Sequence record: MT811961.1
Length of the DNA: 64,000 nt
Strand: one strand, 5' to 3'
The number at the start of each line of letters is the position of its first letter. Position 1 is the stretch's first letter. Positions 12,938 through 44,558 of this stretch are shown here, piece by piece. The position numbers were made by a program, and so were the translations under genes. Under the pieces are notes generated by a model, which searched no databases, was not told where the DNA came from, and saw nothing but the letters and a program-made list of their open reading frames with translations.

Positions 12938-12946
12938 GAGTAGAAT

Positions 12947-25528: not shown

Positions 25529-27553
25529 CTAAATATCTCCGGCTTTCAAAAATGCCGAAACGGTTTTGCCCGGCATCGTTCCTGCAAACCATTGCGAGAA
25601 GTATGTGGGCGAAGAGAATGTATTCCAATCCGCGACTGTTTTCTTCCATGCTCGTTTTAGACGAGGTACAGCAAAGTACTGGTCGTACATACTCACACCT
25701 GCCAGTGAACCAAGGAAGTCAGTCAGCGTTGTATCTTCATCAAATGCAGAGAAGCTGGTTATGCTATCTAGGACACTGTCACTCAGAGGAACTGACATCA
25801 TCTTATCCATGTTCTCAACGGTCATCGTTACTTTAATGGCTGTTGGCAACTGGTTGATCTGACGACCGATGTTTGAAGTACCCAGTTCGATATTAACACT
25901 GCTGATTACACCGAGACGAATATCTTCAAATGCCTGTGAATGAAGTCGACATAAGAATGGCTGTACATATGAGTTCTTACCAGAGCGTCTAGGCAGTACG
26001 CCTGCCAGAATACAACAAAGTGGCAAATAGACACGAGTCAGGATTGAGAACTTGTTGCCATAAGGAGTAGCAAACGTCATCGTATAGTCTTGACTGGCGA
26101 TTTCCGCAGAGCTATCATCATAGACATCTGACATGTCCATCATTGCACCTGAGAGCGCGCCCTCTAGACCAATACCAATAGAACTTACTGCACCGGCAAC
26201 CAAGTCCTTGATAGCACCAACAGTACTTTCCATCGCATTGAATACAATGTTGTCGCCGATGTTACCACCGAACATACTGATCTGAATATCTCTGGCTTGT
26301 TGAGCCACGCCATTCGCAGTTTCTTTCAATGGTGCTTCTTTCGTCGTATTGCTGAACGAATGACTGATTGGGCCTGTCTTATCCACATGGAAACTAACAA
26401 AAGCTGAACCTTCTTGTAAGTCTGCCTTCATGTATTCCCATAATGAAGTTATATCATCCCAAACCTTTTGTTCTTCTTCAACAGCAGGACCGGCGTCTTG
26501 TGCCACAGCACTGGAGTTACGCTCCCTTGCTGCTTCTAGTGCTGCTTGGTTTTCTGCTTCGACATTGTTTAAATTGGCCGAATTGAAATATCCCGTATAC
26601 TCATTCATTGCTTCTGTATGAGTCTTAGGACGCTCATCCTTGAGTGTGTTTTCTTTGCCGAGATTCTTCAGTCCAGTGACATAATCCTGGCGTGCTTGTT
26701 CACCAGTCGTTTTGATGCCGCTCTCTAACTCGAAAAGGGCCTCATTGAACTGGTTGGCCATACGTTGTGAACGAGATGCGATAGCTTTGACATCAATGTA
26801 TGCCGAGCCATTCTCTCCTTCACCACCGCCGCCAAGGAACACATCAGGCAGCAGTCGTTGCAGCTCATCTACTTTACTTGGTGCTTGACCATTTAAGTCA
26901 ATCTTCCCGTCTTTGATTTCGTCTGCGCCGACCGGATCCATCACTCCCATGTCCACAGCAAGTTTGTTAAACATGAGTGCCACGGCATTCCAGTAGAGTG
27001 CCATCGTAGGCTGCATATAATAAAACTTACTGTATGGGTTACCGCTAATCGCAGCAGAGATTCGGTTGACGAGGTGATTGAGACCAAAGAAAGTCTGTAA
27101 TGGCAAAGTAAACAAAACACCAGCTGCATAACCGATGGATTGGAAAACACTGCCGTTTACCGTGCCATATTTTGCCATAGCCGCTGCTGCGGGACTATAG
27201 AAGTTTGACATAAACGAAGTCATTGAGTTGTACTTTTGTATACCGAACTGCAATGAGATTCGCTGAGCATTGTCATCGATGGCTTCTTTGTAACCCTGTC
27301 CCATGGAACGACATCCTGCGGCAATGGTATTTACCTTTGGGTCACTCCATCTACAGAACTGGGGAGGTGGGTTCAATACGCGATTTCCACCAAGAGTTGT
27401 ATCGTAGTAGTTATAGCTATTATTGATGTCGGCACTATTTGTACCCGCACCACCTAGGGCTTTGCCCGCATAACCACGGTTACCACCACGTTTAAAGAAT
27501 GCCTGTCGTACCCAGGCAGTATCTCTGCCTCTGGCAGTTATTTCGTCCGCCAT
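25529..27553 (-). CDS. Virion structural / baseplate hub-like protein (674 aa; phiKZ gp182-like)
   Basis: Directly downstream of the giant tail protein; GGAG SD; position matches phiKZ-like synteny. Confidence 0.6.
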   Translation of the reverse strand: MADEITARGRDTAWVRQAFFKRGGNRGYAGKALGGAGTNSADINNSYNYYDTTLGGNRVLNPPPQFCRWSDPKVNTIAAGCRSMGQGYKEAIDDNAQRISLQFGIQKYNSMTSFMSNFYSPAAAAMAKYGTVNGSVFQSIGYAAGVLFTLPLQTFFGLNHLVNRISAAISGNPYSKFYYMQPTMALYWNAVALMFNKLAVDMGVMDPVGADEIKDGKIDLNGQAPSKVDELQRLLPDVFLGGGGEGENGSAYIDVKAIASRSQRMANQFNEALFELESGIKTTGEQARQDYVTGLKNLGKENTLKDERPKTHTEAMNEYTGYFNSANLNNVEAENQAALEAARERNSSAVAQDAGPAVEEEQKVWDDITSLWEYMKADLQEGSAFVSFHVDKTGPISHSFSNTTKEAPLKETANGVAQQARDIQISMFGGNIGDNIVFNAMESTVGAIKDLVAGAVSSIGIGLEGALSGAMMDMSDVYDDSSAEIASQDYTMTFATPYGNKFSILTRVYLPLCCILAGVLPRRSGKNSYVQPFLCRLHSQAFEDIRLGVISSVNIELGTSNIGRQINQLPTAIKVTMTVENMDKMMSVPLSDSVLDSITSFSAFDEDTTLTDFLGSLAGVSMYDQYFAVPRLKRAWKKTVADWNTFSSPTYFSQWFAGTMPGKTVSAFLKAGDI

Positions 27554-27567
27554 AATTACTCCAGTCT

Positions 27568-27594
27568 AAAAATAAGAGAGGGCCGAAGCCCTCT
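27568..27594 (-). terminator. Terminator-like hairpin after the giant tail gene
   Basis: The minus strand reads AGAGGGC-TTCG-GCCCTCT then CTTATTTTT. Confidence 0.65.
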
Positions 27595-27595
27595 T

Positions 27596-30500
27596 TTAAC
27601 TACCCAAGTTTACTACAGGTGTCAGATTGGCTGACTGTCCTGCTTTCTTGGACTTCGTTTTACTTGCGTTACCGCCATCGATCACAACTGGCTCTTTGTT
27701 GTTAATCGCCTCGGTCAAGAGTCCGATTGCTTTAATCAGTTCGTCTTGCTTATTGGCAATTGTTTCCAAGTGGCCTGTTTGTGTCTTAAGTTCAGCAGTA
27801 GACTTACCAGTTGCATTGCCCAGGTTGGCCAATTGCTTGTTGGTTGCATCTCGCTGTGCGGTATCGAGCGTTTCTTTTGCAATTTGAGTCGGCATGAATG
27901 CACGTTTGTTATCATCGGTTTTCTTGATGACTTCTTCCGGCATTGCATTTGGATTGGCCGCAGTCTCGATTGTATCGATCCCTTCTATCGACTTCTCCGG
28001 ATCCGCCTTCTGTTCTTTGCGTATGTCGCGCTCTTGAGTCTTCGCCTGTTCTGCCTCTTTCGAGCCATTGACGATGTATTTAAGTGGGTCATAGGCGTTA
28101 GTATCATTCCACATACCGTCGCGTAATTCGAAGTGCAAGTGTACACCACGAGAATGGCCCGTGTTACCCATTGTCCCTAATAGGTCACCCTGTTTAACAC
28201 GATCGCCTTTTCTTAATCCAGAAGCAAAGCTATGTAGGTGTGCATAACGAGTATGCCAACCACCTGGATGTCGAATGTAAATACACTTGCCGTAAGACTT
28301 ACTGTATTCGCGACGCATTATAATCCCGTCGGCTGCGGCTACAATAGGAGAGCCCTCGTAGTCTGCCCAGTCGACACCCTTGTGCATGTGTTGACGTCCA
28401 TTGACCGGACGCATACCAAACGGAGAAGTTAATCGTCCGCCACATGGCTTAATAAGCTTAATTTTCTTGCCGCCGAATTGTTCTTCTTTGGACATTACTC
28501 CTTTACGAAGATTTTCCAATGAAGTCTTTTGGGTGGCCTTAGCTTGTGTATTGTTCTTTGATGCTACAATAGGAACATCGTCAACTTTATTGGCTGCTTG
28601 CTTGGCTTTCTCTGCCTCAGCATAAGCGCGATAAGCTGCACTAGTCGATTGTACTGCCGTACTGTCGCCATGAGCTTCTTTTAAAGTCTTACCAGCTTCA
28701 CGTGTTTGTTTCGTTACGTCTGTTTTACCAGAGTACTTCGCAATCAAGCTATCGTGGTAGATTTTAACTTCTGCTTCTGTCAGTAGTCGGTCAATCATTG
28801 GAGCTGCTGAACCAGTATACTGAAGCGGCTGCTTGCCAGAGAATGCATTTACTTTCTTAAGGAAGCGGATGATGTCTTTGTCATCGATCTCGTCATCTAT
28901 GTCGAATAGATCTAACTTACGATCAATTTCAAATACTGCTTTGGCATGAAGTGACAGTACCGGAGCAACACGCATACGAATCCAATCAGCAAAGTTACCG
29001 ATCTCCGCGCGGTTGTCCATGCTCACACCCCAGAAGTCAGCAATCTCTTCCCAATCAATATCGCTCGTATTAACTTTTAGTCTCGTACCAGTTTTACTGA
29101 CTGATTTGTAAAGCACCTTCTCGGTATTACGAATGGCTGCAAGGTAATCCCCATTTTCTGGGTCAAGACCATACTGCATGAAACGTAGCTTTTCCAGTTC
29201 TTCTGCATCGGAGCGTTCATAGAAGTATTCTCCGATTTCCCAAACCGTCCAAGCTGCACCAGCCGCTGCCAAAGCAGGAGCTGCAATGCCACCCAATACT
29301 GCACCACCGGCTGCAAGTAAACCTTTCTTAACAATCTGACCACCTACTGCTTTAGCAATACGCGTACCAGCTGCACCGACTAGTCCTTTAGCACCACGAA
29401 TAGCCGCACCGCCAAACTTGCCGATCTTGCCTAGTTTACCTAACTTACCAGCCTTGCGTCCTCGACCAGTCATATCGCCCGCTACATCGGCGGCATCACC
29501 CAAACCACCGGCGATACTATTTGCAGTCTTGGCCATGAACATGCGTTCCATCCAAGCTTTGGCTGTACCAACCAAACCACTCAGACTTGTACCGATTACA
29601 CTAAGACCCATCAGCAACTTACCCCATGGGCTATCGTCGTCTTTGGCTTCTTCTTTAGCAATCTGTTCCACATCTTCAGTAGTCGCACCTTCACGTCTAC
29701 GTTGGATTCGATCCATCAGTGAGTTATCACGATCACCGTCACCATCAGTATCTCCGGATTTCTTCGCTGGTTTACCTTGGTCAACCAAAGTTTGCAGGAG
29801 CGTCTCTGTAGGAGACGCAGTTCCCATTGGCCAGCGTTCCATCATGAAGCTAAGGATGCCGTGTAGGTATTGTTCACTTCTTCCAGCTGGAGCATCGCTG
29901 TCGCCAGTCTCACTAATGCCTGTATTTGGTCCGACGCCACGAATGCCGTCTAAGACCGCCATTGGCAATTTAACGGCACCTTTGGTCAAAGCAAGGCCAA
30001 TGTCCACGCCACCTTTAACAGCGGCAACACCGAGGCCTACAGAGCCTTTAACGGCACTCCAGCCTAACTGCACACTTCTCTTAGCTAGCTGGAAGGCACG
30101 GTTAGCATCAATAGGTACACCAAAGCGGTCCACCAGTCCACGAAGGATCTGTTGATGTGATAGAACGACGTTGCCGTCTCGGTCAAATACCTGTCCATCG
30201 ATATCAGAAGGTTTCGTAATAGGAGTACCATTCTCACTGTAGTAGCCGCCTTGCTTCATCAACAATGCAGACAGTACAGGGATCTCTGGTTCACCTTTAA
30301 CGAAAACGTCCCGTGGTCGATCAAGCATCTTGTTAAGTAGCTTAACCGGAACACCGACTGCCGCACGCATTGCTGCAAAGGCCATTCGATATTGAATGCC
30401 AATAGCACCGCCCACCATATTGAGGCCACTGCCTACAATGTTCGTTAATGCAGATAGTTTGCTACCTTGGCGGTCATAGAGGTTAGAAGCCGCATCCTCG

Positions 30501-33391
30501 GCAGAGATAATCTCATTGCCCTCAGAGTCAACCACTTGTCCAGTGATGTCTTTTAAGCTTCGTACTGGATTGCCTGAATTGACGTCGATGAAGCGACCAG
30601 CTTTAAGATCGCCAATATTAATTACTGGCGTTGAGCTGCCTGCGATATAAATATCACGAGGTCTGAAACGATCACCTAGAATGCCTAGTGCACCACCGAC
30701 TGCGTTTAATCCGCCGCCGACAATACTACCACCAGCACCGATACCGGCTGCCGTCATCTTGTAAACACCAGACGTATAGCTACTTAGTAGATTTAGACCC
30801 GCGGAGGTTATAGCAGAGCCACCTCCAATAATCTTACTCATCAGTCCTTCTGGTGCCTGAACCTCTACAGTTAGGTCTTTCTGGAAGATCATGTTAAGAA
30901 GTTCTGCTTGAGTAACAAATCCGCGTTCTACCATTTCGAACATGTTGTTACGCCAACCATCATCCTGTGGACCAGTTGGAGCACCGGTGTCCACCATCGG
31001 CTGTGTACTGCCGAATTGACTTACCACATGAACAGGAACACCTTCGATCTTATCGCGAACTACTGTAAACATTTTCCAGAAGTCAAATGCCGTTGCTGCT
31101 CCCGAAGGAGTATAGTCCATATTACCACGCTGTTCTGTAGTAGGGCGACGACCAGCAGACTGCATCTCTTCAAATGGGTTGTCCATTCGTTCTGGTACTT
31201 TCTGTTCACCGAACATTAGTTCGTCACGGATTTCATTCTGACCACGTAGGTTTTGGTTACGTGTAATGATACCGGTGGACTGTAGAGTATCTGTTGCACC
31301 AGCTGCATACAAGCGGTTAATCTGATTTTGCATATCATGGAAAACATTACCAGTCTCACGAGCTGCTTTAGCAATAATACGGTCATTTTCACGTGGGTTG
31401 TTTTCTGAGCTGTCAATTACCTTCTGGATCTCTTCAGCAATCTCTGGTCCAAAACCACGCTGTGCAAATGCAGCAGCCATTTCTTCGAACTTAGGGCGAG
31501 TTGCCTCAAGTGCATTATCCGTGAACCATAGTTCCAGTGCATTAAGTGCTTCTTTTGAAACCGCTTCTGCGCTTGGGTTGATACGACGCAAAGCATCCTT
31601 AGCAATCATTGTCTTACGAAGACCACTGTCTTGACCGGCAGCCAGACGATCAATAATATCGTTTTGGCCATCGGTAGTACCACTTGCTTTTGTCAACGCT
31701 TGGTCGATACGCTTACCCATGCGCTCATTGCCAGTATCGAAGAAATGGTCGACAATACTGAAAGCATTGATTTCCTTACCAGCTTCACGAAACTCTTTGA
31801 TTGTACCAATAAGACTATCGACAACCTTAGGGTCCATAGGACGACCGCCGTTCAAGAGCTTCATTACTTCTAGCTCTTGTTCACGTCTCGTTTTACCTGC
31901 GGAACCTTGAATCATGTTCATTGCGGTTTGGGCGGCTTCTGCTTCTGTTGTAAATGTTTCAGTATTTACATCGTAAACAACTCGCTCGACACCAGGTCCA
32001 TTATTAAAGATCATTGTTTGTTCTAGGATTCTGGAAAGGAATCCAGGAATGATCTCGATAATAGACTTACGAGTAATCTCGTCAAAGTATCGTTCTTTTG
32101 TAGCCCCATCACCAGCAAGGTTGTTGCTGATACCTAAGGAGATATCATCCATGCGTGGAATCAGAGCACGTAACTCATCGGCCATTGCCTCGGAGCGAAT
32201 GCGTCCAAGGAACGGGAATTTTTCTACGATCTCTTCTGGGAAGCCACCGTCCCAATTATCCAGAGCTTCTTGTAGTTCACTTGGATAGTTCTCAGCATAG
32301 AATGCTAGCTCTTGTCCATACTTAGCGATCTTTGGGTACTTGTTGAGTATTCGACGGAATCTATCCCCAAGGGCTTCGCCGCCATATTCTGCGGCCATGG
32401 AAACACCCATGCCACCTACCATTTCCAGTGGGTTGATTTCATCACCCATTCCGGACATAGCGCCAGTGGCCTCGCCAATGGTTTCTGCAAACTCGACAAC
32501 ACTGCCTACGACTTCATTTAGTCGATTCTGAATGTTTTCTTGTAGCCTACCGCCAAAGTTACGGAAGTAATCACTTGCTTTTTCGGATACCTTGCCAAAG
32601 ATACGGTTTTGTGCCTCTTCAGAATAACCCTCCATTAACGTTTGTTTTGCGAAGTCAGGAAGAGAGGTATTCTTAACGAGAGCCTTGTTACTTGACTGAC
32701 TATCGGCAGCAAATGCTTTCGTTGTCGCTACTAGTTCTTGTTGTCCAAAGAACATGCGTTGTTGCAGTTCTAAAGACTTGCGCATATAGTTGTACTGGAT
32801 TGAATCTTGGAAAGAAGTCAAACGATTCAGTTCAGCTACAATTGCATTTGTATTTTGTTTACCCGCTACGAGTTCTGTTTCAAGTAGCTTGGCATCTTTT
32901 TCTTTGTTCTCGTTATCGCGAGTAAAGATAGAATTAAGTACCGCATCGACAGCATTGTCTTGCGGATTTTGGGATGTTAGATTTGAACGCGTCTCTTCTT
33001 CTTCTGGTCTTAGAAAGCTAGCAATGGAGTCCATCTTGAATCCAAGGAAGGATTCTTTTTTGCTAGTTTCAGCCATCTCTGCCAAGTCTTTACGAATGGC
33101 ATCAAATGGTCCTTTTAACTGCTTCTTCGTGTCATTGTATAGAGATGTTGCATCTCTTGTCAAATTGCGAACTGAAGTAAGTGCAGTACCATAACCTTCT
33201 GGTAAAGAGTTTTCTAGGACAACGCGAGCCACATCAGCTTGCATGTCTTGATCAAGGACAGATTCCAAAGCACCGTCAAACAGTGCTTGTATGGGTTCGC
33301 GCTTATCTTCATCGACATCATCGATTCCGAAATCATCGCTCCACAGGTCGTCCATATCTAGGTCGTCATCATCGAGATTGAATTCGCTCAC
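27596..33391 (-). CDS. Giant tail (tape-measure-like) protein with a C-terminal M23 peptidase (1931 aa; phiKZ gp181 position)
   Basis: Long helical and Gly/Ala-rich segments. M23/LytM motifs HKGVD, YAHL and HLHFE lie at about 28065-28465. The gene is divergent from the virion RNAP genes. Confidence 0.85.
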   Translation of the reverse strand: MSEFNLDDDDLDMDDLWSDDFGIDDVDEDKREPIQALFDGALESVLDQDMQADVARVVLENSLPEGYGTALTSVRNLTRDATSLYNDTKKQLKGPFDAIRKDLAEMAETSKKESFLGFKMDSIASFLRPEEEETRSNLTSQNPQDNAVDAVLNSIFTRDNENKEKDAKLLETELVAGKQNTNAIVAELNRLTSFQDSIQYNYMRKSLELQQRMFFGQQELVATTKAFAADSQSSNKALVKNTSLPDFAKQTLMEGYSEEAQNRIFGKVSEKASDYFRNFGGRLQENIQNRLNEVVGSVVEFAETIGEATGAMSGMGDEINPLEMVGGMGVSMAAEYGGEALGDRFRRILNKYPKIAKYGQELAFYAENYPSELQEALDNWDGGFPEEIVEKFPFLGRIRSEAMADELRALIPRMDDISLGISNNLAGDGATKERYFDEITRKSIIEIIPGFLSRILEQTMIFNNGPGVERVVYDVNTETFTTEAEAAQTAMNMIQGSAGKTRREQELEVMKLLNGGRPMDPKVVDSLIGTIKEFREAGKEINAFSIVDHFFDTGNERMGKRIDQALTKASGTTDGQNDIIDRLAAGQDSGLRKTMIAKDALRRINPSAEAVSKEALNALELWFTDNALEATRPKFEEMAAAFAQRGFGPEIAEEIQKVIDSSENNPRENDRIIAKAARETGNVFHDMQNQINRLYAAGATDTLQSTGIITRNQNLRGQNEIRDELMFGEQKVPERMDNPFEEMQSAGRRPTTEQRGNMDYTPSGAATAFDFWKMFTVVRDKIEGVPVHVVSQFGSTQPMVDTGAPTGPQDDGWRNNMFEMVERGFVTQAELLNMIFQKDLTVEVQAPEGLMSKIIGGGSAITSAGLNLLSSYTSGVYKMTAAGIGAGGSIVGGGLNAVGGALGILGDRFRPRDIYIAGSSTPVINIGDLKAGRFIDVNSGNPVRSLKDITGQVVDSEGNEIISAEDAASNLYDRQGSKLSALTNIVGSGLNMVGGAIGIQYRMAFAAMRAAVGVPVKLLNKMLDRPRDVFVKGEPEIPVLSALLMKQGGYYSENGTPITKPSDIDGQVFDRDGNVVLSHQQILRGLVDRFGVPIDANRAFQLAKRSVQLGWSAVKGSVGLGVAAVKGGVDIGLALTKGAVKLPMAVLDGIRGVGPNTGISETGDSDAPAGRSEQYLHGILSFMMERWPMGTASPTETLLQTLVDQGKPAKKSGDTDGDGDRDNSLMDRIQRRREGATTEDVEQIAKEEAKDDDSPWGKLLMGLSVIGTSLSGLVGTAKAWMERMFMAKTANSIAGGLGDAADVAGDMTGRGRKAGKLGKLGKIGKFGGAAIRGAKGLVGAAGTRIAKAVGGQIVKKGLLAAGGAVLGGIAAPALAAAGAAWTVWEIGEYFYERSDAEELEKLRFMQYGLDPENGDYLAAIRNTEKVLYKSVSKTGTRLKVNTSDIDWEEIADFWGVSMDNRAEIGNFADWIRMRVAPVLSLHAKAVFEIDRKLDLFDIDDEIDDKDIIRFLKKVNAFSGKQPLQYTGSAAPMIDRLLTEAEVKIYHDSLIAKYSGKTDVTKQTREAGKTLKEAHGDSTAVQSTSAAYRAYAEAEKAKQAANKVDDVPIVASKNNTQAKATQKTSLENLRKGVMSKEEQFGGKKIKLIKPCGGRLTSPFGMRPVNGRQHMHKGVDWADYEGSPIVAAADGIIMRREYSKSYGKCIYIRHPGGWHTRYAHLHSFASGLRKGDRVKQGDLLGTMGNTGHSRGVHLHFELRDGMWNDTNAYDPLKYIVNGSKEAEQAKTQERDIRKEQKADPEKSIEGIDTIETAANPNAMPEEVIKKTDDNKRAFMPTQIAKETLDTAQRDATNKQLANLGNATGKSTAELKTQTGHLETIANKQDELIKAIGLLTEAINNKEPVVIDGGNASKTKSKKAGQSANLTPVVNLGS

Positions 33392-33457
33392 GACATTCCC
33401 CTTTAATTGTGTACGGTCTATTTGATTTGGCCGCTTCGAAAACCAGGAGTTATACCA

Positions 33458-34933
33458 ATGCCAAAAGCGTCTCTTAAACTGAGACAGATCCCGTTCAACA
33501 TAAGTTTGTTGGACAATAGCAGAGGACGACTGAAAACATTACTGCCAGTACGTTCTTTGTCTACGATGGATCACTTGTCTTCAGACTTTCAACAAGATGG
33601 TTTATATTCCACTCTGATCTTTGGTCAACAGGGCACACCACAGCGCGATAAACGACGCAGTTACATCGACCTGAAAGTTCCTGTCTTTAACCCAATTTAC
33701 TTTAAAGAACTTAAACGACTTAAGTCTCTTTACACTGATATCATCCTTGGTCGCGAATACGCCGTATGGGACGAAAAAGAAAAAGATTTCGTTCGTTCTA
33801 AAGAAGGCATCCTAGATGGTCAAACTGGTTTCAGTTTCTTTTTGAGTCACTTTAATGAACTCGAGTTTAAACAAGGTGAATCGAAAGAACGTCAACTTCG
33901 TATCGAGGTACTTGAAGAATATCGCTCAGTGGCCTTGGTAGACTTCCTACCTGTACTGCCTGCTGGTTTGCGTGACGTTCAGTTTGACGAAGCCTCTGGT
34001 CGTCCAGTAGAAGAAGAGATCGGTCCATTGTACCGAAAAGCAATCTCTGCTACTAATGCAATTCCAGTTGGTCTGGATGACAAAAACAGTCCATTATTTG
34101 ATGGTCCACGTCGTTCGGTACAGATTGCCATCAATGGTATCTCAGAATACATCATCAACATCCTTGCAGGTAAGAAAGGTTTCCTTTCTGGTAAGTTTGG
34201 TTCTCGTCGTGTATTCGGTACTACTCGTAACGTATTGACCTCAATGGAAACAGGTTCTGAGTTCTTGGGTGACGATCGTCAACCTGACTTGAGTACGACC
34301 ATCAATGGTCTCTTCCAGTTCATGAAGGGCGTAGAACCAATCCTTGCTTTGAACAAACTTCCTAAAGGTTTCCTTGTTGACTTCATTGAGAACATTGACC
34401 AAACGGTTAGTCTTATCAATCGGGACACATGGAAAGCAGAAGATACTGTGGTATCGCCAAAACAGCGCGATAAATGGGGCACTAAGCAAGGCCGTGAAAA
34501 ATTGATCAACGGCTTTAAGAATGCGAAGTCTCGTCACAAACCTATTATGGTTGACGGCTACTATCTCAAACTTATCTATCGCGATGACAAGTACTTCAAG
34601 GTTATGAACTCTATTGATGAGTTACCTGAAGGCTATCCGAAAGAAAACGTATCTCCGATGACATGGGTAGAAATGTTCTATCTTCATTGTGCGGAGATCA
34701 TGCCTAACGTTCGTGTGTTCAATACACGATATCCTGTAACTGGTCTTGGCTCAAACTACCCGAGTGAAATCTACATCAAGTCCACGAACACGGGGTATCG
34801 TCTAAAACAACTAGATGACAATTGGGCAGAAACTGACAACGAGGTTTTGGAATATCCGAAACCAGGCATGTCGTTCTACGAATCAATGGCAGTTCATCCA
34901 TCGTTCCTCTCCGGCCTAGGTGCTGATTTCGAT
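33458..34933 (+). CDS. Virion RNA polymerase beta-prime subunit (phiKZ gp180-like), exon 1 (492 codons)
   Basis: GKKGFLSGKFGSRRVFGTTRNV corresponds to beta-prime GKxGRFRxNLLGKRVDYSGRSV. The exon ends in ...GLGADFD, the first part of the catalytic motif. ATG 33458 has an AGGAG SD. Confidence 0.88.
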
Positions 34934-36327
34934 TTAACCTGGGACGAGCATATCTATTAACAACTTTATAGTTGAGTCTAACCATATGGACTTATAACAA
35001 AGAGTTAAAAGATATAGAATGAATGCCAAAGAAATACCAGACTACACTGGCTATGTTATTGACGCCATCGGCGTCATAAAAAATAAGACTACTGGAAATT
35101 TACTAAAAACCTACGTAAATGACGCTGGTTATCCTGTGCTTCGCATAAAACATGACAAGCGCGGTCATGCCATAGTTCGTTTGCATAGACTCGTTGCATT
35201 GACACATAACAATCCACCACCCAATCACGAGGAAATGGTTGTTAATCACATCAATGGCGATAAAACCGACCCAAGAAGTGTAAATTTGGAATGGCTCACC
35301 AAACGAGAAAACAATATCCATGCGATTTTGACCGATCTCAATAAGGACGCCATCGACATACAAATAAAATCACTTGAAGACGGTCGAGAGTTTATTTTTG
35401 AATCTCTTACTCGTGCTGCACTCTTCTTCAAATGGCCACCGACTAAGTCTAGAACTTGGTTAAAATACGGACACGTTGATCCAGAAGGCAAATATGTCTT
35501 TAAATATGTTTGTGATCCCAGAGATTTTGAAACATTAAAAGACACCAAGTACGTAACGGCAAAAGAACTACCACGGAAAAAAGTTTTTGACTCTGTTTTA
35601 GCGAGAGACATTAACACAGGAAAAATTTTAGAATTTAAATCTGTGTCCGCTGCTCAGCGAGAGTTAAAAGTTTCGTCTGTTGTACTGCGAAAAAGACTAC
35701 GCGAAAAAGACCAGTTTCCAATTGGTTCGTTTTCAGTCAAGTACAAAAAAGACATTACCGAATGGGAAATTTGGACGCCAGAAAGAGTAGCCAAAGAAGA
35801 TAGGTCAAACAAAAAAGTAGTCAAGGCAATTGATGAGAAGGGTAATGTGTTTACGTTTCCTAGTCTCTATGCCTTTTACGTTTTTACTGGTGGGAAATCA
35901 AGGTCCACCACGAATGTAAAAACCGCCATAGCCAAAACTGGCAAATACAAAAATTTTATAGTTACATACTAAAAATCCCTGTCGAAATAAAACTCCGTGA
36001 ATTGCTGGGACGTCACACACTATAGAAATAACCAAAACGGAATCCGAAAGGATATGCGGCAACGGTCGTCTAAAGACAGAAAAGATATTTCTATTGTCAT
36101 ATGTGTTAATAGCACTAAGTGACCAAAAGAGTGGGTATCAGCAGCTATGGGCCTAAGTATTGTCGAGATGACAAGATACGGTCAGTGTTCACAGACTATC
36201 GAAAGCGCCTTCGGGCAGTGAGTAGAGTAGCGTAAGTCCTATCACAGGCGGCGAAGTGCGGAGCCTCTAATTAGCACTGAAGAAGTGAGTAAGGTTAGAG
36301 TGATGATATAGTCGAACTAACATGTTG
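34934..36327 (+). mobile_element. Group I intron (IA-like, 1394 nt) in the vRNAP beta-prime gene
   Basis: The 5' exon ends in U and the intron ends in G. Core elements: P AATTGCTGGGA (36000), Q TATCAGCAGC (36136), R GTTCACAGACTA (36187), S ATGATATAGTC (36303), P3 CTCCGT/GCGGAG. Splicing restores GADFD|GDMLSCN. Confidence 0.9.
35019..35972 (+). CDS. Intron-encoded HNH homing endonuclease (NUMOD4-HNH-3xNUMOD1, I-HmuI-like; 317 aa)
   Basis: HRLVA...VVNHINGDKTDPRSVNLEWLTKRENNIHA; N-terminal IPDYTGYVID; three C-terminal F.S...A helix-turn-helix repeats. Confidence 0.92.
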   Translation: MNAKEIPDYTGYVIDAIGVIKNKTTGNLLKTYVNDAGYPVLRIKHDKRGHAIVRLHRLVALTHNNPPPNHEEMVVNHINGDKTDPRSVNLEWLTKRENNIHAILTDLNKDAIDIQIKSLEDGREFIFESLTRAALFFKWPPTKSRTWLKYGHVDPEGKYVFKYVCDPRDFETLKDTKYVTAKELPRKKVFDSVLARDINTGKILEFKSVSAAQRELKVSSVVLRKRLREKDQFPIGSFSVKYKKDITEWEIWTPERVAKEDRSNKKVVKAIDEKGNVFTFPSLYAFYVFTGGKSRSTTNVKTAIAKTGKYKNFIVTY

Positions 36328-36495
36328 GGGGACATGTTGTCATGTAACTACGTGTGGAGTCGTGACTCTGTACAAGAAGTAGACGAACTAATGGGAAGCT
36401 GGAAAAACTATCTATCTCCTAATGGTGGTCTAACCGTTAAATCATTCGATGACGTTTCCGAATGGGTGCTGTCATTTATGACTGGTAACGAATAG
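36328..36495 (+). CDS. Virion RNA polymerase beta-prime subunit, exon 2 (55 aa)
   Basis: Open frame GDMLSCNYVWSRDSVQEVDELMGSWKNYLSPNGGLTVKSFDDVSEWVLSFMTGNE-stop. It supplies the GD of DFDGD. Spliced product is 547 aa. Confidence 0.85.
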   Translation, partial: GDMLSCNYVWSRDSVQEVDELMGSWKNYLSPNGGLTVKSFDDVSEWVLSFMTGNE

Positions 36496-36503
36496 GAATT
36501 AAA

Positions 36504-37886
36504 ATGTTACAACTAGAATCATTTGTAAAGAAGTATGAGCATCGACTCAGCGCTTCTTTATCTACACCGAGACTTATTGATGCATGGGAAATTGAGTTGC
36601 CGCTGGGTGCTTTGATTCACCACATCAGTGACTCTCAAGCAGATATCGGTATTCGTGGTAGTCATCCCCTACTGCAAAAAGAAGAAGGCAGTGCACGAAT
36701 TGCTTTTAGTACCGAAGGTTATGGTAAGTTTGGTAACTACTCGAAAATCAACTCGAATACCAGCAGTCTAATTAAAGCTTATCGTGCTAGTCAACGCGGG
36801 ATGCAATACTTCGGCACAGTCGATCGCGCAATTGCCCGAGAAAGAGAACTGGCCGTTGTGGACTATAGTCTACTTACTCGCATGTTCCGTTACACTAACT
36901 CAGTTGGTCGTTTCTATGACGAATGGCGTAACCTAACAACTGCTATTGTTGCACAAGTCAACGACCAGACCTATCTGCGTAACCACATCATCCCAATCAA
37001 GTTCCCTTCAAACCTGCCTACCGAAGCTAACTTCAAAAAGGCTGAAGATGAACTACCGCGTGACTTAATGGATGACTTCACTGAGTCAGGTCACTTTTGG
37101 CTACGTGAACTACGTAACTTAATGCTAGGCAAGGCCGAAGTATTAAAGCTGGTTGAGCCTAAGCGTGTTTGGTTTGTTATTACCGAAGGTCGTAACAGTG
37201 TTGTATTATCAGCACAACAACTCATAGAGCGTGGTGAGTCACAAGTCACTAAGATCTATGACATGTTTGAGAAGACACTTGCTACGCGTCCTGGCGGTGA
37301 TAATGACGCATTGGCAGATGAAGATACAAGTGGCCCGGATATCACAAGCGAGGAACAGATTCTTCCTGGCACTCCAAATAGCCTTATTCGCAAAGTATCT
37401 TCACTAGCAGAAGCAGGTAAACTGACTCCTAGTCAAGCACGTGCAATGATCAATGTTCAACAACGAACAAAGCAATTGCCTAATCCCTTTGATACTTCTA
37501 AGTCCATCGAAGAAGCATCGAAGATTACTCCGGAAATGACAAAGGTTAAAGAGCGTCTTGTTTCCTCTGTTAACCCATTGTCGGTTCCATCACATGCGTT
37601 GAATGCATCGACTAACTCTCTTTATGCCGACTATGTTAAGTCAGGTCTCTATGAAGCAGACATCTTGAATATGTTACAGCATTTCTCTGCTGCTGGTGTA
37701 ATGATTCAAGACATCAAGAAAGAAGACAAAATCGATGCATTGAATGACGCGATGACTCTGAAGGTTAAGCTACTGCCGGTTAATGGTAAGTCTACTACCT
37801 TACCAATCGAGCTATTCAATGTAAACGAAGACGGTACATTCAAGGCCGACGGAGTGAGATACGCACTTGATAGCCAAAAGGTGGAT
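36504..37886 (+). CDS. Virion RNA polymerase beta subunit (phiKZ gp178-like), exon 1 (461 codons)
   Basis: The ORF ends ...RYALDSQKVD just before a TAA that begins the second intron, and joins in frame to VPIRK at 39437. Confidence 0.8.
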
Positions 37887-39436
37887 TAAAACTCAAATAG
37901 AATAACCATAATTTTATAGTTAGATTTTATCTAGGTATATGATTATGAAAAGATTAGATTTCATCGCCAGAATTAAAGCTAAGTTTGGCGACATGTTTAC
38001 ATTCGAAAAAACGGTTTATGTCAATAACAAGACAAAGGTAATACTTACTTGCAAGGTCCATGGTGATAGGGAATACCTTCCTGGAAATATCCTTAGACCG
38101 GCGCATCGAGGCTGTCCTTTCTGCAATGGCATTAAAGACAGAGAAGCTTTTGTCAAAGAGGCCAAGGAAAAATACGGCGATGTTTATGACTATTCCAAAA
38201 TAGATTATAAAAACATCTCAACTGAAGTGACGGTGATCTGTAATAAACACGGTCCATTTCAGGCCATTCCGCTCAGACATCTCGAAGGCAAACGCTGTAT
38301 GGAGTGTTTCCGAGAAAGCAAGCGCCTTACATTCGATGAGTTTGAAAAACGCGCCGAAGAAATCCATGGCAAAAGTTATCTTTTTCTAGAGTCCTCTTGG
38401 ATTTCAGGAAGACACCATGTCAAAGCCGTATGTAAAAAACATGGAGAATTCGAAGCAAGGGCCAGTAGCATTCTGGCCGGCACCGGATGCAAAAAATGCT
38501 CCGATGAAAAACAGCGTCGGGCAGTCGAAGATGTTATTGAAGATATCAAAAAGATACACGGAGATCGATATTGCTTTTCTGAATTTGTCTACAAAGGCAA
38601 TAAAACAAAAGTTACTTTGATCTGTCCAGACCACGGGCGATTTGAAAAAACTCCAAATGACATACTTACAAATAAGGGCGGCTGTCCTACATGCAAAGAG
38701 TCAAAAGGCGAGCGACAAATCCGAATGTTTCTGGAGCGAAAAGAAATCTCCTTTGAGCGCGAATACCGAATAGAGGGTTTTAACTTTAGATGGGATTTCT
38801 ATCTGACTGACTTTGATATCTATGTCGAGTACCATGGTATTCAGCATTATAAACCTGTTGAGCGCTTTGGTGGTTTTGCAGCACATAGGGAGTGTGTCGT
38901 CCGCGACTTCGAAAAGAAGAAGATCGTAAAATCCCTAGGGGCCAAACAGATAACCATTTCGTGTTTGTCCGGTAAAGCCCCGGAAGAAATTCTCGAAACT
39001 CGGCTAAAAAGAATGAAACTAATCTGATTCTATTATGCTTTTACACGGCATAGTCCACTTAAAACCTACCTAATTGCGGGAACTGCTTATACGTAGTAAC
39101 TACTACTTTGTCCTGGAAACAGAGATAAATACCTCATCCAGTAATGGAGGCATGAGGAATAGTGAAAACGTTACTATCTTGCAGAATCGACGCAGCGAAG
39201 TCCCTAAGTCTATTGAGAGATATGGGATGAGTTCAGAGACTATCGAAAGCTTAACCCTTGTGGCGACATAAGGGGGACAATAGCCCAAGGCCAACATACC
39301 TTGGGGGAAGCGAGTAGAGTACAGCCAGCAAAAGGCGCTGGTGTCATTGTGACTTAAATGGAAACGGTAGGGCCTAGTCTAGACTCACGCAGTTTAACTA
39401 GGTATGATATAGTCCTGCACTATGGAGATAGTGTAG
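37887..39436 (+). mobile_element. Group I intron (IA-like, 1550 nt) in the vRNAP beta gene
   Basis: The exon ends in U (GAT) and the intron ends in G. Core elements: P AATTGCGGGAA (~39072), R GTTCAGAGACTA (39231), S ATGATATAGTCC (~39404), P3 CCTACC/GGTAGG, P9 GCACTAT-GGAG-ATAGTGT. Confidence 0.9.
37939..39027 (+). CDS. Intron-encoded homing endonuclease: four Cys/His repeats plus a Vsr/DUF559 (EDxHD-like) nuclease (362 aa)
   Basis: Four repeats F...(H/Y)G.Y.......V...CxxHG.........GCxxC, then SKGERQI...WDFYL...VEYHGIQHY. Confidence 0.85.
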   Translation: MIMKRLDFIARIKAKFGDMFTFEKTVYVNNKTKVILTCKVHGDREYLPGNILRPAHRGCPFCNGIKDREAFVKEAKEKYGDVYDYSKIDYKNISTEVTVICNKHGPFQAIPLRHLEGKRCMECFRESKRLTFDEFEKRAEEIHGKSYLFLESSWISGRHHVKAVCKKHGEFEARASSILAGTGCKKCSDEKQRRAVEDVIEDIKKIHGDRYCFSEFVYKGNKTKVTLICPDHGRFEKTPNDILTNKGGCPTCKESKGERQIRMFLERKEISFEREYRIEGFNFRWDFYLTDFDIYVEYHGIQHYKPVERFGGFAAHRECVVRDFEKKKIVKSLGAKQITISCLSGKAPEEILETRLKRMKLI

Positions 39437-42001
39437 GTGCCAATTCGTAAGACACATCCACATCGTGCGGCGTTGACTTCTTACTTTGGTAAGCTATTCA
39501 TTCAGCGCTCTGAGTTAGTTAAGTACAACTACTCGGCCTGGGTTGAAAAGAACATTCGTTCTGCTGGTCTGCTTTCAGACGATAGTCGTGTTCAAAACAT
39601 CCGCTTTGGTGAGAACCATATTCCGAAGAAGATTCAATTGCCACGTGCTTATACCGCTGTAATGCAAACCATTTCTGAATTCAAGTCAAAAGGTATTACG
39701 TATTACTTTGAATATGTCCATCGCGATGAGTTCTTTGGCGAGGGCGCAATCAAGAAATATGAAAAGAATGGTCATGTCCTAATCGGTAAGAACAAAGACT
39801 GGGCATTCACGATTGACATGAATGACGTCGTGCATCGACATCAACCTAAGAAGTCTGAACCGGTTGGTGACTTCATGGAAGCGATTGGTGGTGGATGGGG
39901 CAAACGTCCTCAGGAGTTCTCAGAGCTTAAGAACCTAAAAGGCAAGCGTGTACCTATCGGTATTCTTCTGGCGTACTCTATGTCCTTTACAAAGCTTCTG
40001 CGTAAGCTAAATGTAAAATACCGCAACGAACCATCTAACGTTCGCTCTACGGCAAAAGACAATGAGTTTACTATTACGTTTGCTGATTACCGCTATCACT
40101 TTACGTTCCCTAATAAGACAGCTGAATTCATCATTGCTGGCTTTACTGTGGCTGACGATATCCTCAAAGGCTTCAATGCGGGTGACCTAAACAAACGTGA
40201 TTCGTACACACCAATCTTCAAGTCACTTGGTCTTGGTAACTACCATCTGAACGAAATCGATTTAATCGAAGAACTTTTCGTCGACCCAATTACAAAAGAA
40301 GTATTGGAAGAGATGAAAGAACCAACAGACATTCTTGATCTGTATGTTCGTTGTTCTGAGCTGGTTACCAACGATGAGTTCCCAGATGAAACAGACCCTA
40401 ACTTCATGCGTGAGCGTCGACTAGAGCGTATCCCTGGATTCGTTTATTCGGCAATGGCTAAGGCAGTACGTGAACAACGTAACAAACCTAACCCTTCATT
40501 ACATCCGGTTTATGTTGGCCCTCGTGACGTCTGGACAGCGGTTACTTCTGACAGTACTTGTCAGCTAGTTAAAGAACTAAACCCTGTTCACACTCTTAAA
40601 CAACTAGAAGCGGTTTCACTATCTGGTGAAGGTGGCCGTGCGGCAGAAACTCTGGTTAAGTCTTCTCGTGTTTTCCACAAAGAAGATGTTGGTCGTTTCT
40701 CGGCAGATACACCTGACTCGGGTAAAGTAGGTATCCGTACCTTTGCTCCGCCTAATACGAAGATCCGCAACCAACGTGGCATGCATGGTTCATTCGACTT
40801 TGAACGTGATGGTGCTACATCTGTATTGTCGACAACTGGTCTATTGCTACCTGCGATGCACCACGATGACGCTAAGCGTCAGAACCTTGGCTCAGTTCAG
40901 ATGTCAGCATTTACTCCTGCTATTGGCTACGATGTAATGCCATGTCGCACTGGCTACGATGCAGTTGTTGCATCTCGTCTCGGTTCACTATATGTTGTTA
41001 AGGCGGAACAGGAAGGTAAGATTGCGAAGATCGATGATCGTTACATGAAACTAGAATACAAAGACGGTTCTACGAAAGGTTTTGAGATTGGCATTATCCA
41101 CGGCAAGGCCGAAGGTAAATCTATTCCTCATCACTTCGAAACTGATTTGAAAGCTGGCGATACATTTGTAGCCGGTGACATTCTTGCATGGAACGTTGGC
41201 TTCTTTGAGCGTGACTTCTTTAGTCCTCGTAACGTAGTTATGAAGACTGGTGCAATGTTCCGCACGGCACTAATGGAAAACAATGATACCCTAGAAGATG
41301 GTTCTCGCATCGGCCCACGTGTTACTAAGAAACTTAGTACATGGACTTCAAAAGAAAAAGGTCTTTTGATTCGTGCAGATCAATCAGTCGAAGGTTTGTT
41401 AGAAGTTGGTACTGATGTAGAAGACGATACGATTCTTTGTCGTATTCTTGAAGGCGGTACAGAAGGCATTGCTAATACAGATGCTTCTCTTGCTGCTCTT
41501 GATAAACTAGTTGGCTCTAACCCAACTGCTGGTAAGCAAGGCAAGATTACACGAATCGAAGTTGTTTACAATGGTAAGCTTGAAGACTTCAGTCCTAGTC
41601 TACGCACAATCATTGAAGCCGATAACAAACGACGTGCAAAACATGCTCGTGAAATGGGTGGACGTATCGCCAAGACCGGACAGATCTCTCGTGCTACTTT
41701 CGTAAGTGGTGAGAAAGTAATCGAAGGTACGATGGTAATCTCTATCTTTATCGATAGTCTACTACCCCACTCTATCGGCGATAAGCACGCCATGGGCAAC
41801 CAGCTTAAGTCTGTTCCTGGTGGTACACTAGATGGTGTAAACCAAACAGAGGATGGAAAAGAGCTGGATGTTATCTTTGGTTATCGCTCAGTAAACGACC
41901 GTATTGTAGGTTCTCCTATTAAACAAGGTACGGTTAATACGACGATGATTCGAGTTACCGAAATGGCCATGGACATTCTTGTCAACGGACCAAAGAAGTA
42001 A
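39437..42001 (+). CDS. Virion RNA polymerase beta subunit, exon 2 (854 codons)
   Basis: Beta motifs DTPDSGKVG (ETPEG-like), HDDAKRQNLGSVQM (HDDANR-like), NDTLEDG, GDKHAMGNQLKSV (GDK-like) and LDVIFG...NDRIV. Spliced product is 1315 aa. Confidence 0.9.
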   Translation: MPIRKTHPHRAALTSYFGKLFIQRSELVKYNYSAWVEKNIRSAGLLSDDSRVQNIRFGENHIPKKIQLPRAYTAVMQTISEFKSKGITYYFEYVHRDEFFGEGAIKKYEKNGHVLIGKNKDWAFTIDMNDVVHRHQPKKSEPVGDFMEAIGGGWGKRPQEFSELKNLKGKRVPIGILLAYSMSFTKLLRKLNVKYRNEPSNVRSTAKDNEFTITFADYRYHFTFPNKTAEFIIAGFTVADDILKGFNAGDLNKRDSYTPIFKSLGLGNYHLNEIDLIEELFVDPITKEVLEEMKEPTDILDLYVRCSELVTNDEFPDETDPNFMRERRLERIPGFVYSAMAKAVREQRNKPNPSLHPVYVGPRDVWTAVTSDSTCQLVKELNPVHTLKQLEAVSLSGEGGRAAETLVKSSRVFHKEDVGRFSADTPDSGKVGIRTFAPPNTKIRNQRGMHGSFDFERDGATSVLSTTGLLLPAMHHDDAKRQNLGSVQMSAFTPAIGYDVMPCRTGYDAVVASRLGSLYVVKAEQEGKIAKIDDRYMKLEYKDGSTKGFEIGIIHGKAEGKSIPHHFETDLKAGDTFVAGDILAWNVGFFERDFFSPRNVVMKTGAMFRTALMENNDTLEDGSRIGPRVTKKLSTWTSKEKGLLIRADQSVEGLLEVGTDVEDDTILCRILEGGTEGIANTDASLAALDKLVGSNPTAGKQGKITRIEVVYNGKLEDFSPSLRTIIEADNKRRAKHAREMGGRIAKTGQISRATFVSGEKVIEGTMVISIFIDSLLPHSIGDKHAMGNQLKSVPGGTLDGVNQTEDGKELDVIFGYRSVNDRIVGSPIKQGTVNTTMIRVTEMAMDILVNGPKK

Positions 42002-42019
42002 AAGCAGCACAAATAGGAT

Positions 42020-42038
42020 AGGGCGTGCGCGCCCTTTT
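42020..42038 (+). terminator. Short terminator after the RNAP genes
   Basis: AGGGCG-TGCG-CGCCCT followed by TTT. Confidence 0.55.
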
Positions 42039-42099
42039 CTATAAATCAGCGTCCTAGCCAAAAGCGCATTGGCAAAAGAAGGACAAACTGGAGTTTAAC

Positions 42100-42285
42100 A
42101 TGTTAACAGATCAAATAAGAAAACAAAATGCAACAGTTGCTGTTGCAGCTATTGATCTTGTATGCCAGACCATGAAGACAATGGAAGGTGGCTATCTTGG
42201 CAAGATCGATATGGACTCTGTAGCACAAATTGCTGCTGCGGAATACAACCAAGAACTTATTAACCGGAGAGAACATAATGCTTAA
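42100..42285 (+). CDS. Small hypothetical protein (61 aa)
   Basis: GGAG SD; 8-nt ATGCTTAA overlap with the next gene. Confidence 0.55.
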   Translation: MLTDQIRKQNATVAVAAIDLVCQTMKTMEGGYLGKIDMDSVAQIAAAEYNQELINRREHNA

Positions 42286-43774
42286 TTCACATAGTACTGC
42301 CCAAGGCATGGTAGTTGCAGGCAATGCTAGTGCACGCGGCTTGGTTCTTTCTCCAATCCCTGCATCTCCACTTGCGGCTATTGTGACTACGTTGAGTGGC
42401 ACTACAGAAGCAGAATTTCGAAACAAAGGCGCTGATGCAATTATCAGTGCATCTGCACCGCATGCGTTAAATCCACACGACCACGGCGAAGAAGTAGCAG
42501 TACTTGCGCATAACTTGAAAAATGTTCTTGAGCGTAAAACTCTACGTCTTATCCAAGAAGAGATCAATCCGCTTGTTCGTGAAATTCGTAGCGAGATTAC
42601 TCGTGCGCGCATCGAGATTGCAGAAGAAAATGCTTTGGGTCTTGGCGTTCAATTGCATCGCCTACCAAATGTTTACTCTAGCTCTTACTTGGAGCAAGCA
42701 GTTAAGAACCCTAGTCTACGCGAACAGCGTAAAAAGTCTATCGGTAACAGCCTGCTTCGTAAACTTATTTCTGACCTTACACTTCCTCAGCTAATCGAGA
42801 CAATGAAAACTCCTTCTACTGAAATCAACACAGAGCTTGCTGCTCTTGTAACGAAATCGAACGAAGGTTACGTTGGTAACGAAAAGAGCTATGTTGAAAC
42901 TGGCTTTGAAGTTAGCGGTGCTATCTTCCTAGAGCCTAAACGCATTGGTCTCATGTCTGCTTACCTTGAGCATAGTGATCTATTGACGTTCATGTTCTTG
43001 CGTGGTGTTCGTGCTGGTAATCATCCTCTTGTATCTCCTGATGCATTGGATGCAAACGAACGCGTTGAACTAGCTGGTGCTATTTCTTCTTACCAATGGG
43101 CTGTTAATCAGCGCATGGATTACCTTGCTCGTGAAGCAAAAAGCGAACGTGTGTTTATCGGTACGGAAGGTAAGACAACAGTTCACGCCGACGAAGCACG
43201 CTACATGAAATGGATTGAAGTAGAAGAGAATACAAAAGAACTTGTTCTTGGTGCTCTTGTAAATTATGGTTCGACTGCTACCAACATTCTTAACAGCGAA
43301 ATCAAAGACCGTAAAGAACTAGTTGATCGCTACAACTTTGCACTGAAGAAAGCATCAGTTATCTCTCGTACTGTTTCTGAATCTCAAATCGAACGCATTA
43401 CAGAAAGCGCGATTGTTCGCCATCTGAATACCGAAGCAGAACGTTCAGAGACAGCGAAAGAATCTCTGCGTGATGATGTTGCTGCGGTACGCGAATACTT
43501 CAACTGTACTCGCAAAGACCAATTGACTTCCGATGCGGCATTTGTAACTCGTGCAGTTTGCAAGACGATCGGTCGTGGTCTTGATGCTGAAGTAGTTATT
43601 ACTGAAATGCAAAACTACCTAGAACGAGATGGCAATGAAGATGCTTCTTTACAGAAAGCACTTGAGTTTGGTATTGCTCGTTTACTTGCTCGTTTTATGG
43701 CGAAGCAAACACTTACCCAACCGTTTAACAGTGGTGCTGGTTTGAACGCTCCTACTGTCGCTACAGCGGGTTAA
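42278..43774 (+). CDS. Probable virion head structural protein (498 aa; gp177-like by position)
   Basis: ATG 42278 has a GGAG SD. The protein is helical and lies between the vRNAP beta and protease genes. Confidence 0.6.
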   Translation: MLNSHSTAQGMVVAGNASARGLVLSPIPASPLAAIVTTLSGTTEAEFRNKGADAIISASAPHALNPHDHGEEVAVLAHNLKNVLERKTLRLIQEEINPLVREIRSEITRARIEIAEENALGLGVQLHRLPNVYSSSYLEQAVKNPSLREQRKKSIGNSLLRKLISDLTLPQLIETMKTPSTEINTELAALVTKSNEGYVGNEKSYVETGFEVSGAIFLEPKRIGLMSAYLEHSDLLTFMFLRGVRAGNHPLVSPDALDANERVELAGAISSYQWAVNQRMDYLAREAKSERVFIGTEGKTTVHADEARYMKWIEVEENTKELVLGALVNYGSTATNILNSEIKDRKELVDRYNFALKKASVISRTVSESQIERITESAIVRHLNTEAERSETAKESLRDDVAAVREYFNCTRKDQLTSDAAFVTRAVCKTIGRGLDAEVVITEMQNYLERDGNEDASLQKALEFGIARLLARFMAKQTLTQPFNSGAGLNAPTVATAG

Positions 43775-43780
43775 CAAAGG

Positions 43781-43817
43781 ATGCGACTGGGGTAAACCTG
43801 GTCGCATTTTTCCTTTT
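43781..43817 (+). terminator. Rho-independent terminator
   Basis: ATGCGACTGGG-GTAAA-CCTGGTCGCAT followed by a T-rich tract. Confidence 0.7.
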
Positions 43818-43829
43818 AAGGATTTATCG

Positions 43830-44558
43830 ATGGAATTTGATCGCAAGAAAAGAAATCGCGATAAAGTCATAGCGGCGATTCATGAAGAAAGCAAGTACAA
43901 CAAATGGATTGCCAAAGAAAAGATCAGAATTCTTTTTCCCAAGCGTTATCTTGGCGGTAAGCTTGGTAACCTAGATGAACGCTTCAATACGGTAGCTATC
44001 TTTGTTGTTGTACTAGAAGACGGCTCATGGGACGTATGTTCTATCTGTTCAATCATACCTTTAACACCGGCAGGTTCAACAATCGTCAAAATCAATCAAG
44101 TCGACTACTATGAACTCACTTGGGAAAAAGGCGATGTGATTTGTCCAAACTTGAATCTCGTCCAGCGCTCTTCATTGGCGTTTGAGATTTACGATGAGTT
44201 CGTTACGAAAAACCGAATTCCTCCTTATATGGACAATATCGATCAATGTAAGCTACTTGATACAATCAAAGAGTTTACTGGCGTTGACCTACAAACAAAC
44301 TATTCTCTTCTTCGTATCTATAATGCAACCACAACTCGTGCTACGCAGGATAGAACTCAACCGGCTCGTGAACTATATAAGAAGCAAAGTGATTTCCATG
44401 CAATGGATGTAGATCGCATTGCATTGCGTTCTGTTGCCTATGTTGCCGATAACACGACTACGCGTCTGCTTGGTTCTTATCTGGCACAGGGCTTCAACTC
44501 TGCCTTAGTTAACCCGTCGGAAAACATCGAAGAAGTAGAGCAAATACTTATCTCATAG
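43830..44558 (+). CDS. Conserved phiKZ-like protein (242 aa; gp176-like by position)
   Basis: Clean ORF immediately upstream of the prohead protease. Confidence 0.55.
   Translation: MEFDRKKRNRDKVIAAIHEESKYNKWIAKEKIRILFPKRYLGGKLGNLDERFNTVAIFVVVLEDGSWDVCSICSIIPLTPAGSTIVKINQVDYYELTWEKGDVICPNLNLVQRSSLAFEIYDEFVTKNRIPPYMDNIDQCKLLDTIKEFTGVDLQTNYSLLRIYNATTTRATQDRTQPARELYKKQSDFHAMDVDRIALRSVAYVADNTTTRLLGSYLAQGFNSALVNPSENIEEVEQILIS

Follow-up and report, generated by a model that had tools for sequence, protein, structure and literature searches.

How does a phage obtain an active RNA polymerase (RNAP) from a gene whose catalytic motif is broken in two? The question is posed by a 64,000-nucleotide stretch of record MT811961.1 (the window), in which the reading frame for a virion RNAP (vRNAP) subunit breaks off within its DFDGD motif and is resumed further downstream. 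Positions 33400–37900 of the window are 100% identical, at the same coordinates, to the 286-kb genome of Vibrio phage vB_pir03, whose host is Vibrio harveyi, and they match Vibrio phage C-ZP2022 at 97% (megablast). Because vB_pir03 forms plaques (PMC7765460) and the polymerase gene is taken to be essential, as in phage phiKZ, the gene must yield an active product. The answer we reached is that a mobile group I intron, at 34934–36327, very probably interrupts the vB_pir03 gene for the N-terminal subunit of vRNAP β′. The coordinates of all features are collected in Table 1.

Exon 1 ends GGT GCT GAT TTC GAT (GADFD) at 34933 and exon 2 starts GGG GAC ATG (GDM) at 36328. The two exons were used separately as tblastn queries, exon 1 giving matches in 309 phage records, and their homologues abut exactly in the intron-less phages sm033 (147281/147282) and BONAISHI (25673/25674), both of which read GADFD/GDML. 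The PHROG 2986 profile aligns through positions 3–486 on exon 1 and 487–538 on exon 2. Removal of 34934–36327 leaves an uninterrupted conserved reading frame, as judged against sm033, BONAISHI and the step from 486 to 487 in the profile. The base preceding the intron is U (34933) and its final base is G (36327). These three lines, exon abutment, profile match and terminal bases, fix the junction at 34933/36328 together with a fourth, a guide sequence that pairs at 13 of 13 positions with the exon ends. The junction given in a preliminary description of this DNA is therefore the correct one. Within the Mg-binding motif, the intron separates the second aspartate codon from the third (GADFD/GD), and the claim in the same description that the intron splits the catalytic motif is borne out by the intron-less homologues and by PHROG 2986. 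Its further suggestion, that such an intron could effectively be lost only through precise deletion, is standard reasoning.

The internal guide sequence consists of two adjoining parts. Positions 35982–35988 pair with the end of exon 1, with the splice-site pair itself formed by G35981·U34933, and positions 35976–35980 pair 5/5 with the beginning of exon 2 (36328–36332). The fully paired window is unique within the intron; in shuffled sequences a 13/13 window appeared, at any position, in 32 of 5,000 cases (0.64%). The pairing between guide and exons is more than chance expectation. One alternative guide was considered and rejected, GACGAG at 34943–34948 close to the intron's 5′ end; it carries one mismatch and lies outside the best-scoring windows. 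The guide begins 4 nt past the stop codon of an endonuclease open reading frame (ORF) and 4 nt ahead of P3. Since it is downstream of this ORF, the entire ORF is within the P1 loop.

The group I covariance model RF00028 matches at 35945–36339 with a score of 40.7 bits (E = 5.7e-8 over 6 kb and E = 6.3e-10 over the 286-kb record), in an alignment that spans model positions 1–253. All four core elements reported in the preliminary description could be located, P at 36000–36011, Q at 36137–36145, R at 36187–36198 and S at 36305–36313. The RF00028 match, the core from P3 to P8, the P1/P10 pairing and the terminal G together uphold the identification as a group I intron. The core is IA-like by virtue of its insertion of P7.1/P7.2 type and its long P5 extension. 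Subgroup IA is typical of phage introns; the P2 and P9 helices that also mark it are missing here, both being peripheral elements.

The interrupted gene could be named with the help of phiKZ. Exon 1 has a sole match in the phiKZ genome, gp180, over the full length (E = 1e-86, 35% identity). The gene order is that of phiKZ gp181/gp180/gp178, with a gp181-like tail lysin gene divergent upstream and a gp178-like β gene downstream. In phiKZ, gp180 is the vRNAP subunit that carries DFDGD and is found in virions (PMC10612078). Sequence comparison thus supports orthology of the vB_pir03 gene with phiKZ gp180, the vRNAP β′ N-terminal subunit; by analogy, the vB_pir03 protein is presumably packaged in virions. 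Orthology and gene order also justify the label "virion RNAP" that the preliminary description had used. Neither exon has a match in Pfam or NCBIfam, because this β′ is too divergent, and a search of the Protein Data Bank (PDB) returned only the non-virion β′ of phage AR9. A phiKZ chimallin query found no match in vB_pir03, a result that is uninformative on nucleus formation.

Splicing of the β′ intron, as predicted from these features, would begin in the pre-mRNA with the formation of P1, in which the guide, some 1,050 nt downstream, would pair with the 8 nt at the end of exon 1 and the U·G pair would fall at the splice site. P10 would arise from pairing of the opening 5 nt of exon 2 with the adjoining part of the guide. 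The P3–P8 core would catalyze guanosine-initiated excision and then ligation of the exons, which would read ...GAUUUCGAU followed by GGGGACAUG. This would yield a protein of ∼547 amino acids in which the DFDGD motif is whole.

Several observations weigh against this interpretation. The check with group I covariance models named in the preliminary description succeeded in part: RF00028 matches with a low E value, but its 40.7 bits are under the Rfam gathering score of 50. The model could score none of P1, P2 and P9, the true P1 being 1 kb distant and the other two absent. There is no P2, the gap between guide and P3 being only AAAA, and a conventional P9 is likewise absent, as P7 and the terminal G are just 14 nt apart. 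A hairpin at 36319–36338 competes with P10; the RF00028 alignment ends at 36339, 12 nt beyond the true 3′ splice site, because this hairpin, which lies across the splice site, is taken for P9. The ribozyme core of C-ZP2022, the sole other copy, is identical and so gives no covariation support, and no public RNA sequencing run was found to carry this sequence. As for mobility, no intron-less allele of the β′ intron was found among close relatives (four DNA runs, intron present). The case for mobility rests for that reason on the patchy distribution of the intron and on a tract of near identity with C-ZP2022, and such a tract could also be produced by general recombination.

The missing peripheral elements bear on whether the intron acts alone. 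It might be spliced in vivo yet be non-autonomous, P2 and P9 having been lost, and depend on a protein helper, which might be a chaperone of phage or host or else its own endonuclease, serving as maturase. The sub-threshold score would fit such dependence, as would the retention of a P2 hairpin by the higher-scoring introns in the same gene of phiKZ (92 bits) and Vibrio phage Yong (70 bits), the short interval between P7 and the terminal G, and the hairpin that competes with P10. We nevertheless regard it as unlikely. The helices of the catalytic core, the G-binding P7 and the P1/P10 pairings are all intact, and what is missing is only peripheral. HNH endonucleases are not known to serve as maturases.

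Could the gene instead be split and not spliced? A free-standing HNH endonuclease would then have cut it, and two polypeptides, exon 1 with an 8-residue tail and exon 2 translated from an ATG at 36322, would assemble and rebuild the active site, as happens with some phage genes split by endonucleases. GenBank does show separate pieces, the ATG is in frame 6 nt ahead of exon 2, and the RNAP subunits of jumbo phages are naturally divided among several polypeptides (PMC7598289). This ATG, however, has no Shine-Dalgarno sequence upstream, unlike the neighboring genes, and a full group I core is placed precisely between the pieces, with a guide that matches both exon ends. Distribution of the three Mg-binding aspartates over two chains would have no precedent among 174 contiguous homologues. 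A split gene is accordingly very unlikely. An intron with some other junction would be extremely unlikely: although the five-G run at 36327–36331 supplies several candidate terminal Gs, and the Rfam end at 36339 another boundary, only with 34933/36328 is the frame kept and DFDGD regained, with the conserved MLSCNYVW after it (compare sm033), and the P10 pairing fits this register. The spliced group I intron at 34934–36327 is the interpretation adopted in what follows.

Table 1. Features of the interrupted vRNAP β′ gene of vB_pir03 and of the adjoining β gene
Feature	Position	Strand	Basis or remark
Exon 1, vRNAP β′ N-terminal subunit gene, 492 codons, ends GLGADFD	33458..34933	+	PHROG 2986, E 3e-160; phiKZ gp180, 35% identity
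P1 5′ strand (AUUUCGAU); U34933 is the 5′ splice-site U of the U·G pair	34926..34933	+	8/8 pairs with 35981-35988
Group I intron, 1,394 nt, IA-like (P7.1/P7.2 present, no P2, no P9)	34934..36327	+	RF00028; boundaries set by intron-less homologues
Read-through of exon 1 frame (LTWDEHIY and TAA)	34934..34960	+	False C terminus of QNI20974.1
HNH homing endonuclease ORF, 317 amino acids, between 5′ splice site and guide	35019..35972	+	Pfam, PHROG 59, PDB 1U3E
Internal guide sequence UCCCU-G-UCGAAAU, 13 nt	35976..35988	+	13/13 pairs with both exon ends
P3	35993-35997 with 36259-36263	+	Rfam alignment, located strings; encloses P4, P5 extension, P6 and P6a
P4	36003-36008 with 36138-36143	+	Rfam alignment, located strings
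Long P5 extension	36011-36137	+	Rfam alignment, located strings
P6	36150-36153 with 36180-36183	+	Rfam alignment, located strings
P6a	36158-36164 with 36170-36176	+	Rfam alignment, located strings
P7	36194-36198 (GACUA) with 36309-36313 (UAGUC)	+	Rfam alignment, located strings
P7.1/P7.2 insertion, ~60 nt, structured, inside P7	~36199-36258	+	Rfam alignment, located strings
P8, inside P7	36265-36272 with 36293-36300	+	Rfam alignment, located strings
7-bp hairpin AACAUGU / ACAUGUU, 3′ splice site in loop, 3′ arm is exon sequence	36319..36338	+	Sequence
Omega G, terminal G of intron, first of five-G run (36327-36331)	36327	+	Sequence; junction
Exon 2, 55 codons (GDMLSCNYVW...) and stop	36328..36495	+	PHROG 2986 positions 487-538; tblastn abutment
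Exons of β gene	36504-37886 and 39437-42001		Junction QKVD/VPIR
Second group I intron, 1,550 nt, in vRNAP β gene (phiKZ gp178 orthologue)	37887..39436	+	RF00028, 45.4 bits at 39016-39433

The public record of vB_pir03 shows five separate coding sequences across the gene, at 33458..34960, 35019..35972 ("putative endonuclease"), 35997..36122, 36131..36235 and 36322..36495. The first, QNI20974.1, is exon 1 with a read-through of eight codons, LTWDEHIY, up to a TAA at 34958–34960; it corresponds to the ORF that the preliminary description had dismissed as a mis-annotation, rightly so. The last, QNI20978.1 (36322..36495), is exon 2 with a false ATG start located within the intron. The genome paper names ORF 29 as an RNAP subunit and ORF 30 as an HNH endonuclease, and the word "intron" does not occur in it (PMC7765460). 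Four "hypothetical proteins", QNI20976, QNI20977, QNI20981 and QNI20982 (35997–36122, 36131–36235, 39074–39271 and 39358–39450), fall inside the cores of the two ribozymes; almost certainly they are not genuine. The listings for vB_pir03 and C-ZP2022 thus present, as separate proteins, a false-tailed exon 1, two spurious ORFs from inside the ribozyme and a false-start exon 2, and the real catalytic subunit of 547 amino acids is missing from them. Our analysis corrects the annotation of both phages.

The nearest precedent is in phiKZ itself. An intron in phiKZ gp180/gp179 was predicted earlier (Mesyanzhinov, 2002; Ceyssens, 2014; both as cited in PMC10914365 and PMC11512511). There, gp180 breaks off after GAD and resumes at FDGD; the interval between its two exons contains the HNH protein gp179 and a group I core that scores 92 bits. 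The two systems share an orthologous gene, the same Mg-binding motif and an HNH_3-type ORF between the 5′ splice site and the guide. They differ in that the phiKZ site is 6 nt upstream (GAD/FDGD as against GADFD/GD), the phiKZ intron has a P2 hairpin and the much higher score where that of vB_pir03 has no P2 and 40.7 bits, and gp179, which is 32% identical to the vB_pir03 endonuclease, has an extra N-terminal region. The phiKZ position is occupied by an intron also in the four records of Vibrio phage Yong; XC31, examined in detail, is interrupted at GAD/FDGD by an intron of 70 bits with a P2 hairpin. The vB_pir03 ribozyme core has no significant blastn match to the phiKZ and Yong XC31 cores, and the endonucleases are 26%–32% identical. 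The differences in site, P2, core and endonuclease point to an independent insertion of the vB_pir03/C-ZP2022 intron into the same motif.

The preliminary description had drawn a parallel with an RNAP gene of phage PhiPA3. The parallel holds insofar as PhiPA3 has a group I intron with an HNH endonuclease in a vRNAP gene; it fails in that the intron is in β, not β′. Among precedents, phiKZ gp180/gp179 comes closest. The PhiPA3 intron encodes gp210 and follows "DD" in gp211/209, the homologue of gp178, which it interrupts (Birkholz et al., 2024; PMC11620839). Like that of vB_pir03 it lies by conserved aspartates, and its endonuclease nicks. The equivalent site in vB_pir03 (HHDD/AKRQ, 40870/40871) is empty; that of C-ZP2022 is occupied. 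PhiPA3 gp210 serves as a model for how the vB_pir03 endonuclease might act on intron-less competitors.

Domain and profile matches identify the product of the intron ORF as an I-HmuI-like HNH/NUMOD1 endonuclease. Pfam HNH_3 matches at amino acids 54–99 (38 bits; cut-off 24.8) and NUMOD1 at 197–225 (23.4 bits; cut-off 22.8). PHROG 59 is matched with E = 1.6e-27, and residues 3–99, including the H-N motif block, align with I-HmuI (PDB 1U3E; E = 6e-5). I-HmuI is a nicking homing endonuclease encoded by a phage group I intron, that of the SPO1 DNA-polymerase gene. The host gene is a different one, and the 1U3E chain has 174 amino acids compared with 317 for the vB_pir03 protein. The endonuclease would most likely nick intron-less alleles of this β′ gene in co-infecting relatives, and nicking would most likely drive copying of the intron together with flanking exon sequence (homing).

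The distribution of the intron was surveyed with the intact sm033 gene segment across the insertion site as the query. Among the 209 phage records that matched, the site is contiguous in 174, several phiKZ-like Pseudomonas phages included. The phiKZ gp179 intron is also patchy; the phiKZ-like phages SL2, PA7, PA02, 2PS and others are uninterrupted at its site. A search of IMG/VR for related loci gave two distant loci only, which were not used.

Comparison of vB_pir03 with C-ZP2022 revealed at least 99% identity over 34391–40863, with the intron included, against a background of 85%–89% (blastn) over 44 kb of the window and in the adjoining segments 27400–34390 and 40871–43894. The two copies of the β′ intron differ at 10 positions, none of them in the ribozyme core. 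The left edge of the tract is 543 nt upstream of the β′ intron. The right edge coincides with the HHDD/AKRQ site, which is occupied by an intron only in C-ZP2022. From this arrangement, the tract is probably the footprint of recent gene conversion linked to intron homing.

A broader proposal can be built by analogy with PhiPA3 gp210, and we put it forward as doubtful when taken as a whole: the vB_pir03 endonuclease would be an active weapon and drive element among co-infecting Vibrio jumbo phages, a role that has been shown for gp210. It may nick the DFDGD-coding DNA of intron-less vRNAP β′ alleles, and the near-identical C-ZP2022 tract (4.9 kb, at 34391–40863) may be a footprint of conversion driven by homing. 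The DNA that encodes the catalytic motif of jumbo-phage RNAPs may be a hot spot, with independent hits at no fewer than three positions within 12 nt. Translation of the endonuclease and splicing may be mutually exclusive on any one transcript, since a ribosome terminating 4 nt ahead of the guide would cover it and block P1.

The β gene downstream contains a second group I intron (Table 1), which falls inside the identity tract. Its endonuclease ORF (37939–39027) has DUF723, CapR and treble-clef domains, belongs with PHROG 559 and differs from the endonuclease of the β′ intron. An allele that lacks precisely the second intron occurs in C-ZP2022 and among contigs of two DNA runs, and three synonymous differences are found directly at its site. 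C-ZP2022 has in its β gene a group I intron of 40.2 bits, with an endonuclease, located after two conserved aspartates (11928–13360 of the C-ZP2022 locus). This is the position of the PhiPA3 gp210 intron, and vB_pir03 has no intron there. The two phages thus differ in two further introns inside a near-identical tract. With these two introns present in one and absent from the other, vB_pir03 and C-ZP2022 form a natural pair in which intron homing, and competition mediated by endonucleases, could be tested for marine Vibrio jumbo phages. As vB_pir03 is a candidate for phage therapy in aquaculture, mobile endonucleases that recombine with relatives are worth knowing about.

Jumbo-phage RNAP genes are frequently disrupted by introns (bioRxiv 10.1101/2020.12.14.422802). 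What is described here is an unannotated intron at a new motif position; introns of this kind had been described before in phiKZ and other jumbo phages. With it, the insertion positions in the (N/G)ADFDGD-coding DNA of jumbo-phage RNAPs rise to three, and the current understanding of group I introns is left unchanged.

The paralogous catalytic motif is interrupted as well. A third group I intron of vB_pir03 (MT811961.1, 81751–83073; 54.7 bits), which also contains an ORF, lies in the non-virion RNAP β′ gene at NAD/FDGD, so that both RNAP catalytic motifs of the phage are interrupted. This intron is preceded by a C instead of a U. In phiKZ the non-virion β′ intron of gp55/gp56 is at N/ADFDGD. 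Like the vRNAP β′ intron, these two are group I introns with endonuclease ORFs, but they occupy other positions in the motif. A block of 55 nt in the P5 extension of the vRNAP β′ intron (36031–36085) is 87% identical to sequence in the non-virion β′ intron of vB_pir03. It recurs in unrelated metagenome contigs, as loose ends at 36031, and appears to be a peripheral module common to the introns of marine jumbo phages.

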